Positions 14,599 to 19,476 of a stretch of DNA of 64,000 nt are shown piece by piece. Location of the stretch: the NCBI GenBank assembly GCA_028826165.1, contig JAPDFW010000081.1, positions 744,001 to 808,000 on the forward strand, read 5' to 3'. Source of the DNA: Anaeramoeba ignava BMAN (taxonomy: Eukaryota; Protista; Anaeramoebae). Each line of letters starts with the position of its first letter. Position 1 is the first letter of the stretch. Made by a program: the position numbers and the translations under genes. A model generated the notes under the pieces. That model was not told the origin of the DNA. It was given only the letters and a program-made list of their open reading frames with translations, and did not search any database.

Positions 14599-17396
14599 AT
14601 GTTTTTACGTTTTAAAAGAGCATTAATATTTACATTTATTTTGGATATTACATTGACAGTTGCATTTTTCTTTTTATCAGGAATTAAAAATTTAGACAAA
14701 TTTCTTTCGGCAGAATTTGGTGACTATTCAATAAAAGATTCTGTTATTGATTTGGTTGTAATTTTTACTATTTTTTATTTTGTTATTTTTCAATTAAATT
14801 TACAAATTCGAATTCAAATTCAAATTCAAATTAACCCCTTAAATTAATTCTTAATTGAATTTATCAATCCCCATTAATTTAAAAAAAAAATTATAACATG
14901 AATTCAATTTAAAAATATCAAAATATATGCATTAATATTTAAATAATACTCAAAAAAATAAGATGAGAAAAAATTCAAATAAATTAAAAAATCCAAATAA
15001 TCAAAAAAAAAGTGCCAAATCATTAGTTTGGATAATAAAATATAAATCATTTTATTATTCAAAATTTAATATTCAAAATTTAATATACAATATTTAATAT
15101 ACAATATTTAATATACAATATTTAATATTCAAATATCTAATATTCAATATTTAATATTCAATATTCAAAATAATCAAAAAAAAAGTGCCAAATCATTAGT
15201 TTGAATAATAAAATATAAATCATTTTATTATTCAAAATTTAATATAAAATTCTAATATTCAATATTTAATATCCAATATTCAATATTCTAATATCCAATA
15301 TTCTAAATTCTAATATTCAAATATCCAATATTCAATATTCAATATCCAATATTCTAATATTCAATTCTAATATTCAATATTCAATATTTAATATTTTTTA
15401 TATTATAGATTCTTTCAGTCATTCGAAGTATTTTTTTTGTTGTTTTCTATCTTGTTTCATTAAAAAGATCAGTACTTCCAGCATTTATTATGTGCATAAT
15501 TTCTGTAATGGTTGTTTTATGGAAAGCACCATTTTACTTCAAACAATCACCATTAAATTATCTATTTCAAGATACATTAATTGGAGTTACAGTAATAGTA
15601 TCAGTAACAGAAACATTAGTTGTTCATTTTGCAAATAAAAGAATTTTAGAAGAAGAAGATGTGCTAATTCCACTTATTCAAGATCAAAATCAAATTCTTC
15701 TCAGCAAACGTTTTATAATGACTGAAAGAGCCAATTTCCCACAATATGTTTCTTTTTCGCAACACAAAAACTTCTCTTTATTTGAGTCATATACTTTGCG
15801 TGCACGTCATCCTACAAAACCTATTTGTTTTTGGATCAAATATTCGATTACCTCTCCAAAAAATAGGCAGTGTGATGGATATGGTGAAGTTTGGGGAGTG
15901 CTTTTTTCAACGTAAATTCAAATCCAAATTCAAAATTAAATTTAAAATTAAATCCAAATCCAAATTCAAATTAAATTCAAAATTAAATTCAAAATTAAAT
16001 TCAAAATTAAATTCAAAATTAAATTCAAAATTAAATTTAAAAATTAAATTTAAAATTAAATCCAAATTCAAATTAAATTCAAAATCAAAATAAAATATAA
16101 TCCAAAATTAAATTCAAAATTCAAAATTAAAATAAAATATAATCCAAAATTAAATTCAAAATTAATAGAACAAAATCACCACAAATTATTATTCGTCAAG
16201 AAGTTCCTTTGCAAGAAATTAAATTCCCAAAACGTAAATTTAATATTACTTTCGGAACTAATAGAATGTCTTCAGTTGGAGCCTCTGGATTAATCAAAGA
16301 AGGTCAAGGAAATGGATTTTATCATCCAAAAAATCACGACACAGTTTCCACTCCAAAAAAAACAGAAATTGAAATGGATATTATTACAAATTTACAAGAT
16401 ACAAAACCAATTCAAAACGATTTTGAAACACTTTCTTTATCTTCTGATCCAGAAAATCTGAACTTATCAATTAAACAAAATTACGAAACAACAAATCAAA
16501 ATGAAATTTCATTAAATGAGAATGAAAATGATGAAAATAACGAAAATAATCAAAATAATGAAAATAACCCAAAAAATAATCAAAATGAAATTCAAATTCC
16601 AAATGATAATGATAAGAATAAGAATGAGAATAAGAATGATTTCAAAATTTATGAATGTGGAAAAAATATCAATACAATACAAGTCAAAGATATCCTGCAA
16701 CAAAAAAAACCTTCAATATTTTCATGGGATATTTCATACGAGTCACAAGTCGAGCCAGTATTTCTCTACGAAGAAGCCTTTTACAAAAACATAAAAAACT
16801 TCGAAAACGTGATAGTATGCTCTACACCACTTGCACAATTTGGAGGAGTAATCACTTATTGCGATGAGGAATTTTCAATTGATGGATTTGAGGGTTCACA
16901 AAGTCATGGATGGGGGAATTCATATACACCAGGACAAGTTTGGGGACAAGTAATGGGATTTGAGCAAAATTCGCAAACTTTTTTGGAAATCATCTCAACT
17001 TCTGTTACTGTTAGCTGCGTGACAAAAAAAGTGTTTCTTCTTGTAATGGGTCATAATAATAAAGTTATTCGTCTCAATTCGTTGTTTAGAGGAAATCATG
17101 CTGAATCCCATTCGGGATTTGTTGGTGATTCGTTCAAGTGGGAATTTCATACTGAATCAAATAGATCTTCTTTTCGTGGTGTTGTTACTGCTGAGAAAAA
17201 TTCTTTTCTTGCAATTAGTTCTCTTGATCCAAAAGGAGGTTATATTCATCACCTGATTTCTGAAAATGCTTCTTGTGATTTAATAATCACAAATAAGAAA
17301 ACTCAACATAAAGAAAAGCTTACAGTTTCAAAAAGATTTTCTATTGAAATTACAGTTGATGATGTTGTTGATGGAATTCCTATTTTTGTTCTTTGA
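14599..17396 (+). CDS. Fusion of an N-terminal 4-TM MENTAL-like domain and a bacterial-type tocopherol cyclase/AttH-like domain (~629 aa); exons 14599-14757, 15409-15911, 16169-17396
   Basis: GT-AG introns 14758-15408 and 15912-16168 join three ORFs in frame. N-term: KRALIFTFILD..EFGDYSIKDSVIDLVILSVIR..SVMVVLWK..VTET. C-term: FESYTLRARHP..FWIKYSI..GEVWGV, SWDISY, GSQSHGWG..WGQVMGF, LDPKGG. Gene model is solid; domain names are from recall. Confidence 0.75.
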
Positions 17397-17668: not shown

Positions 17669-19476
17669 TTATTTCTTTTTCTTCAAATTAATTTTTTTAA
17701 GATAAAAATCAAGTTCTTGACCCTCTAAAATATAACCATCAGCTCTTCCACATTGACCTGGTCTAGAAGAGATAGCAGCATAAAGTTTTCCGTCATGGAA
17801 TTGTTCAATAAGAGCTTGTTCAAGTTCGTGATTTTGTCTTCTGTGTTTTTTTTTTCTATAAATGGTTTTTGAAAGTGATTTGCCTTTCTTTTTGTGTTTT
17901 TTTGCTTTCTTTTCTTCCTTCTTTTCGTCTTTCTTTTCTTCCTTCTTTTCGTCTTTTTTTTCATCTTCTTTCTTTTCGTCTTTTTTTTCATCTTCTTTCT
18001 TTTCATCTTCTTTCTTTTCATCTTTTTTTTCTTTGTTATCTTTTGAGCTTTTTGGTAATCCTTTAATTAAGTTTTGTCTTTCCAATCTTTTCTTCTTTTT
18101 CAATTTAAGTTTTTTTTGAAGTTTTTTGGTTTTTAAAATTCGCTTTTTCTTAAGAAGTCGTTTAATTTTTTCGATTCTTCTTTGTTTTGCTTCTTTTTTC
18201 TTTTGTTTGAAAAGTTTAGATTTCGATTTCGATTTCTCATCTTTTTTTTCGACTTTTGTTTCTTCTTTCATGTCAACGTCTTTTGTTTCTTCTTTCTTGT
18301 CAGTGTCTTTTTTTTCTTCTTCTTTCTTTTCTTTTTTAGCGTTGAGAAGTTTTTCCTTCAATTTTGTTTTTTTGAGTTCTTTTAATCTTCTCTGTTAATG
18401 ACAAAAAAAAAACAAGAAATATATAAGTCAAATTGTCTTTTTTTTTTGAAAAAACATGAAAAAAAAATTTTTTAAAAAATAATAAAAACCTTTTCATTCA
18501 TATCTTTACGGATTTTTTCACCATAATGTTGTTCATACCATTGTTTAAATGGTGTAGCATCAATTTGAACAATTGCACTTTTAACGAGAGTTTTTGTTCT
18601 GACAAGTTCATTATTAGAAGCATTATAAACAACATCAAGGATGTTAGTTTTACGAGAAATAGCTAAAAAATTTCATTAATTTTTATAAATGAATTTTAAT
18701 TTTAAATTTTTATAAATGAATTTTAATTTTAAATTTTTATAAATGAATTTTAATTTTTATAAATGATTTTAATTTTAATTTTGATATTAATTTTATAATT
18801 TAATTTTAATTTTAATTTTAATTTTATAATTTAATTTTAATTTTATAATTTAATTTTAATTTTAATTTTAATTTTAGTTTTAATTTTAATTTTAATTTTA
18901 ATTCAGATTTTAATTTTCATTTTAATTTTAATTTTAATTTTAATTTTAAATTGAATTTTAATTTTAATTTTAATTTTATAATTTAATTTTAAATTTAATT
19001 TTAAATTTAATTTTATATTTTAATTTTAAATTTAATTTTAAATTTAATTTTATAATTTAATTTTATATTTTAATTTTAATTTTATAAATGATTTTAATTT
19101 TAATTTAATTTTAATTTTATAAATAAATTTTAATTTTAAATTTAATTTTAATTTTATAAATGATTTTAATTTTAATTTTAAATTGAATTTTAATTTTATA
19201 AATGATTTTATAAATGAATTTTAATTTTAGTTTTAATTTATTTTCATTCAATTAAAATAATCTACCTTCAGTTCCCCAAGAGAAATTGCCACTATTAAGA
19301 CGTAAAGCTCTAAATTTTTGATTTCCACCACGAACTCTAACTAAACGAATTCTTTTTTCACCAAGTTTAGTGTTTGCTGCAGGTCTTCCCATTGTGTGTT
19401 TTCTTTTCTTTCTCCATTGTGATTTCTTTGCTCCAGTAAGTCTTTTTTTATGGTCGGAATCTCTACTAATTCCCAT
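17669..19476 (-). CDS. RPS8: 40S ribosomal protein eS8 with a ~160-aa Lys/Glu-rich insertion (~368 aa); exons 19476-19266, 18662-18490, 18391-17669
   Basis: [29 protein letters not shown]; [36 protein letters not shown]; [24 protein letters not shown]. Confidence 0.95.

Follow-up and report, generated by a model that had tools for sequence, protein, structure and literature searches.

The window, a stretch of 64,000 nt from the Anaeramoeba ignava genome, carries on its plus strand a gene with three exons: 14599-14757 (159 nt), 15409-15911 (503 nt), and 16169-17396 (1228 nt). Together these comprise 1890 nt, encoding 629 aa and a stop, and the reading frame is kept across both junctions. Both introns have 11-14% GC and contain stops in every frame. 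A preliminary description had proposed an in-frame three-exon protein of about 629 aa, and that model is exact: the splices are GT-AG, and the deposited A. ignava hypothetical protein M0811_01510 (P0001, 629 aa) contains the exon translations at residues 1, 54, and 222. The gene has the following features.

14599-14757, plus strand: exon 1, aa 1-53, with MENTAL helix 1, a predicted luminal loop, and the start of helix 2 (55% identity to the paralog described below; 37% to A. flamelloides P0003, E 5e-6)
14758-15408, plus strand: intron 1, 651 nt, GT..AG, phase 0, with AT-rich repeats; missing from A. flamelloides P0003
15409-15911, plus strand: exon 2, aa 54-221, with MENTAL helices 2-4 and the first barrel strands, from profile matches of both domains
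15409-15640, plus strand: MENTAL helices 2-4, aa ~54-130, from the N-domain profile and Pfam MENTAL on orthologs
15652-15669, plus strand: acidic dileucine-type motif EEDVLI, aa 135-140, right behind helix 4, a candidate endolysosomal sorting signal
15748-15906, plus strand: aa 167-219, the AttH-like domain's N-terminal strands, with family-invariant Glu179 (15784-15786), from the family profile
15912-16168, plus strand: intron 2, 257 nt, GT..AG, phase 2, with a 12-nt satellite; position and phase the same in A. flamelloides
16169-17396, plus strand: exon 3, aa 221-629 including the stop, the remainder of the AttH-like double barrel, from a profile match
16305-16712, plus strand: Asn/Glu/Lys-rich low-complexity insert of ~135 aa inside the barrel domain, with 31 Asn
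16713-17387, plus strand: C-terminal part of the AttH-like domain, with GSQSHGWG (His467, 16905-16907) and family-invariant Glu614 (17346-17348), from the profile

The window gene was searched exon by exon, and whole-domain tests used database proteins of A. flamelloides. Exon 2 matches both an A. flamelloides N-domain profile (73.9 bits, exon residues 1-95) and the profile of a bacterial family (43.3 bits, E 1e-9, exon residues 114-166). Because it holds MENTAL helices 2-4 together with the first barrel strands, the fusion is independent of splicing. Intron 1 contains a 90-nt direct duplication (14983-15072 and 15156-15245 of the window, 94% identical) amid 14-nt AT-rich repeats.

Neighboring genes in the window are, by our reading, those for an ABCC transporter, a Rab, a Ras-like GTPase, and ribosomal protein S8; given these ordinary eukaryotic neighbors, the gene lies on nuclear DNA and is no contaminant. 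The ribosomal protein S8-like gene (17669-19476, minus strand) has a long Lys/Glu-rich low-complexity expansion.

One architecture in four Anaeramoeba genes

A paralog lies about 116 kb away on the same contig (G000:C71, ~641.0-643.9 kb; L003:4000-6861, minus strand). Its exon boundaries correspond to those of the window gene, identity is 46-55%, and it was deposited as a 586-aa protein named 'StAR-like'. The EukProt transcript ORF of this paralog consists of exon 3 alone, possibly an intron-retaining or partial isoform. A profile search with the C-terminal part of exon 3 gave 251 matches, topped by P0003 (513 aa) and P0004 (621 aa), both from A. flamelloides. Residues 1-217 of P0003 are encoded in a single exon, with no intron 1, and the next intron is A. 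ignava intron 2 in aligned position and phase. P0004 (L099:5001-6866) has no intron across MENTAL helices 2-4 and the entire barrel. MENTAL helix 1 is absent from P0004/P0152; no exon was seen within 5 kb upstream of P0004, which may be a retrocopy.

These genes bear on whether the model fuses two separate genes. The transcript ORF of the paralog begins at the exon-3 Met (P0002), as such an artifact would predict. Against it, exon 2 encodes both domains without an intron, P0004 spans both as well, and the position of intron 2 is common to both species. We regard the artifact as largely refuted, with a residual chance that is negligible, and the fusion claimed earlier is borne out.

The same architecture thus occurs in four genes: the window gene, its paralog, and two genes of A. 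flamelloides. MENTAL was absent from the other long top matches scanned, whose extensions are an alpha/beta hydrolase, a small unknown domain, or single hydrophobic segments. Among the best 150 of the 251 matches of this one profile search, the MENTAL-barrel combination was found in Anaeramoeba alone, and none was found in the literature searched, in keeping with the initial statement that no such protein had been described. The architecture is apparently lineage-restricted and undescribed, built from two known kinds of domain. Neither the gene identifiers nor PTHR46121 were found in the part of the supplements of PMC11550330 that was searched. Depositors named both P0003 and the A. ignava paralog 'steroidogenic acute regulatory protein-like', a name that masks the absence of a START domain from these orthologs.

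An N-terminal MENTAL domain and a candidate sorting signal

The four hydrophobic segments reported for the N-terminus are present in the hydropathy profile. We assign the domain as MENTAL by sequence homology through the A. flamelloides orthologs. The Pfam MENTAL model (PF10457; gathering cut-off 22 bits) matches P0003 with 35 bits (E 1.6e-8), covering profile positions 4-126 of 176 and leaving the C-terminal ~50 positions unmatched; P0152 scores 22.2 bits and P0004 18.9 bits. The matches to P0003 and P0152 uphold the MENTAL identification originally made. No match was obtained for the window exons scanned singly, a blank that is expected because P0003, when cut at that boundary, likewise drops under the cut-off. 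In the A. ignava genome, a MENTAL-like query matched two loci only, the window gene and its paralog. A PF10457 search of that genome was blank, yet it missed even these two known loci and is therefore uninformative.

Could the N-domain instead be a different four-helix lysosomal anchor, for example one like TMD0, so that the analogy with STARD3 fails? Consistent with this are the lack of any MENTAL score for the window exons and a word search with the N-domain alignment that found no relatives. The predicted structure of the N-domain has helices at residues 2-24, 48-66, 74-95, and 103-139 with a pLDDT of 66 (low confidence), and fold searches with it returned generic helical bundles only, which neither favor nor rule out TMD0 structurally. 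A review of 2021 states that no MENTAL structure had been solved. Against a different anchor, no Pfam family fits the two A. flamelloides proteins better than MENTAL, whose scores for them reach or exceed the curated cut-off; profile positions 4-126 are covered collinearly, and two copies are annotated 'steroidogenic acute regulatory protein-like'. We consider a non-MENTAL anchor quite improbable.

STARD3 of animals is held at late endosomes by MENTAL, which leaves START in the cytosol and binds cholesterol (PMC8472075, PMC13044316). A [DE]xxxL[LI] motif is present in the loose cytosolic stretch of all four Anaeramoeba proteins (joint shuffle chance ~0.002, for a motif picked post hoc). Unlike in STARD3, no FFAT-like or (phospho-)FFAT motif was found in the linker by two patterns, a test that degenerate motifs could escape; there is thus no evident ER tether.

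An AttH-type double barrel of probable bacterial ancestry

The C-terminal domain belongs to a family of ~330-aa, mostly bacterial proteins, whose profile matches exon 3 with 151 bits (E 1e-42). Its consensus includes GHYESYFxRANHP, GSQNHNWG, and NPPG, and the bacterial motifs given in the preliminary description are the genuine family consensus. Neither Pfam nor NCBIfam has a model dedicated to this family; scans of single exons against both collections gave no matches, sequence searches of the PDB gave nothing useful, and word searches yielded self matches at most. The Anaeramoeba domain is collinear with the bacterial proteins throughout, with 33-35% identity in its C-terminal part, and keeps the invariant Glu/His/Glu. 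It differs in its fusion to MENTAL, its low-complexity insert, the loss of about 40% of conserved columns, and a long branch. The Asn-rich insert was claimed correctly; other Anaeramoeba copies have inserts of about 25-120 aa at the same barrel site, and residues 267-280 of P0003 have low pLDDT.

Profile, language-model, and structure searches all support the tocopherol-cyclase/AttH fold that had been suggested, and the structural part of this assignment rests on a predicted model: the domain is an AttH/tocopherol-cyclase-clan double lipocalin-like barrel. ESM Atlas neighbors are tocopherol-cyclase-domain clusters (0.96; TM 0.87). The P0003 barrel model has a mean pLDDT of 83 and a pTM of 0.75, and it matches 2ich with a Foldseek E of 2e-10 and a VIA Z of 23.5 (next unrelated row 8.4). 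The same barrel is found in NE1406/AttH, kievitone hydratase, the CghA/Fsa2/Phm7 pericyclases (Z 23-24 for these matches to the P0003 model), the steroid-bound 25-phosphosteroid lyase (Z 18), CrtC, and hydroxy-GDGT synthase. Structural matches to the ortholog model span Z 18-24, with an rmsd of 3.5-4.2 over 260-295 residues and 7-13% identity. To our knowledge, none of these proteins carries a MENTAL anchor. NE1406 has been described as a template for PF08622, which we take to be the Svf1 family.

Two specific identities were rejected. The Pfam family closest to the bacterial kin, and to the ESM Atlas clusters, is tocopherol cyclase (VTE1, PF14249), but the bacterial kin score 15.7-22.7 bits against a cut-off of 26.6, and the window exons have no match. 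The carotenoid 1,2-hydratase CrtC has catalytic residues Tyr266 and Asp268 (PMC4717167). At the Asp position the close bacterial clade has Asn and the window protein Ser or Gly, depending on the register, so an equivalent of Asp268 is missing in this comparison, a motif alignment to the primer context in PMC4717167 made without structural superposition.

At least 594 GTDB stretches encode relatives, and the best 80 (L015-L094) are mostly from Chloroflexota, Myxococcota, Thermodesulfobacteriota, and Binatota; the loci were picked by two motifs, whose columns are therefore conserved by construction. A GMC oxidoreductase adjoins the family gene in seven of the 80 loci and in all three of the more distant contigs (L101-L103). 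Other recurrent neighbors encode acyl-CoA dehydrogenase, enoyl-CoA hydratase, thiolase, CoA ligase, and HGD/Bcr-type subunits. This gene neighborhood points to catabolism of hydrophobic compounds. Cholesterol oxidase is the best NCBIfam match of the GMC enzymes, but their score of ~90 bits is far short of the cut-off of 850, and their PDB matches include no cholesterol oxidase, so this identity was not assigned. A ~150-aa gene of unknown kind sometimes lies beside the GMC/family pair and is fused in P0023. In the Desulfobacterales-type protein P0007 (L100:3157-5148), an alpha/beta hydrolase (Hydrolase_4) is fused to the same barrel, a further hint of lipid substrates.

Quick trees of the exon-3 region group the four Anaeramoeba sequences as a single clade (support 98-99), which sits among bacterial rows on a long stem with 2.4-3.2 changes per site; one quick tree places this clade inside a mostly bacterial group with a support of 96. 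Within the clade the sequences pair by species, with moderate support. The barrel was probably transferred from bacteria before the two Anaeramoeba species split. AU tests did not reject grouping with eukaryote-like homologs (p-AU 0.14, 0.46) or with a Desulfobacterales sequence (0.48), and an origin from a Desulfobacterales symbiont is not favored. Anaeramoeba is rich in bacterial gene transfers (PMC11550330). The earlier proposal that a laterally acquired barrel replaced START is likely in its first part, given the nesting among bacterial sequences, and outruns the evidence in its second, as no MENTAL-START gene or ancestor could be demonstrated; a barrel joined to a free-standing MENTAL protein would explain the gene equally well. 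A few eukaryote-like homologs of the barrel (P0006, P0016, and P0115) have a single N-terminal hydrophobic segment, lack MENTAL, and keep the bacterial motifs; their scatter in the trees suggests separate transfers.

The family has 37 columns with at least 80% conservation; 22 of them are retained in the window protein, whereas the family median is 92%. Together with the long stem branch, this suggests a changed role. Glu22, His174, Trp-Gly, and Glu317 (profile numbering) are kept across all Anaeramoeba copies. Anaeramoeba has lost the near-invariant Asn175 and His180, as well as the YxNPPG loop and CxN, with losses that vary among copies.

Lipid carrier, enzyme, or scaffold

From this architecture, homology, and fold we infer a location, ligand, and activity. 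We tentatively favor, at a little short of even odds, an Anaeramoeba-specific analog of STARD3: an endolysosomal carrier, anchored by MENTAL, for a sterol or isoprenoid lipid. This reading is favored over a membrane-anchored enzyme, a scaffold or sensor, a non-MENTAL anchor, and an artifact. MENTAL and the acidic dileucine motifs would place the protein in the membrane of the late endosome or phagolysosome, with the barrel facing the cytosol by analogy with START in STARD3. A sterol or isoprenoid lipid may be held within the cleft that separates the two barrels, as ceramide is in yeast Svf1, whose two lipocalin barrels carry the lipid between them (PMC10038888). The barrel would then lift lipid off the vacuole membrane and hand it on elsewhere, acting as a carrier more than an enzyme. 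In this way prey-derived lipid could be salvaged by an anaerobe in which no triterpene cyclase was detected. The fold matches, among them one to a steroid-bound lyase, the many conserved residues lost, the missing CrtC Asp, and the lipid-catabolic genes around the bacterial kin count in favor of this reading.

Genes elsewhere in the A. ignava genome are consistent with lipid salvage: three NPC1 N-domain loci and three MSP (VAP/MSP) loci were identified, and no match was found for squalene(-hopene) cyclase. SHC has been reported for A. flamelloides only. The A. ignava genome also has four START loci, which lie on other contigs with no MENTAL-like match within 1.5 kb.

The main rival, which we consider unlikely, is a membrane-anchored lipid-modifying enzyme (a hydratase, lyase, isomerase, or cyclase) that remodels or detoxifies prey isoprenoids, hopanoids, or steroids at the digestive vacuole. 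Enzymes with isoprenoid or polyketide substrates make up most of the solved members of the fold, the AttH hydratases include CrtC and hydroxy-GDGT synthase, and GMC oxidoreductases accompany some of the bacterial kin. The retained Glu/His/Glu, common to all Anaeramoeba copies along with Trp-Gly, is equally compatible with catalysis and is a point against the carrier. Opposing the enzyme are the variable losses of near-invariant residues, the non-acidic residue at the position of CrtC Asp268 in either register, and the lack of a linked partner enzyme in the eukaryote.

Less probable still is that the protein senses lipid or serves as a scaffold at the membranes of endolysosomes or symbiosomes, its barrel binding proteins or reporting lipid but neither moving nor altering it, much as if STARD3NL, which has no START, had gained an interaction domain. 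Such a role would fit with the rapid divergence, with low-complexity inserts that vary, and with an A. flamelloides copy that has lost helix 1; conservation of the core barrel residues and fold in all four genes speaks against it.

Relative to known systems, the protein is a new variation on the STARD3 design and belongs to none of STARD3, tocopherol cyclase, and CrtC. Like STARD3 (MLN64) and STARD3NL it begins with a four-helix MENTAL domain (PF10457 on orthologs), and like STARD3 it continues through a loose linker to a C-terminal domain of lipid-handling fold; unlike in STARD3, that domain is an AttH-type double barrel and there is no START. Svf1 is likewise a eukaryotic protein of two lipocalin barrels targeted to membranes at its N-terminus, but an amphipathic helix directs it to the cis-Golgi and its ligand is ceramide (PMC10038888); the likeness we draw to the Anaeramoeba barrel is one of fold.

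More tentatively than the carrier role itself, the protein may be an independently evolved equivalent of STARD3, in which an old eukaryotic MENTAL domain and a bacterially acquired AttH barrel became a non-vesicular carrier exporting prey sterols or hopanoids from the phagolysosome, or across symbiosome membranes. If so, MENTAL would be a modular endolysosomal anchor far older and more widespread than animals, and the AttH double barrel would serve as a membrane-anchored lipid-transfer domain. MENTAL's presence in a metamonad, joined to a domain that is not START, bears on whether it is an ancient modular lysosomal anchor. The work also draws attention to a widespread, unstudied bacterial family of the AttH clan linked to GMC oxidoreductases. 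Recovery of lipids from prey by sterol-auxotrophic anaerobic protists is poorly known, and this gene is a concrete, testable candidate for such a process.
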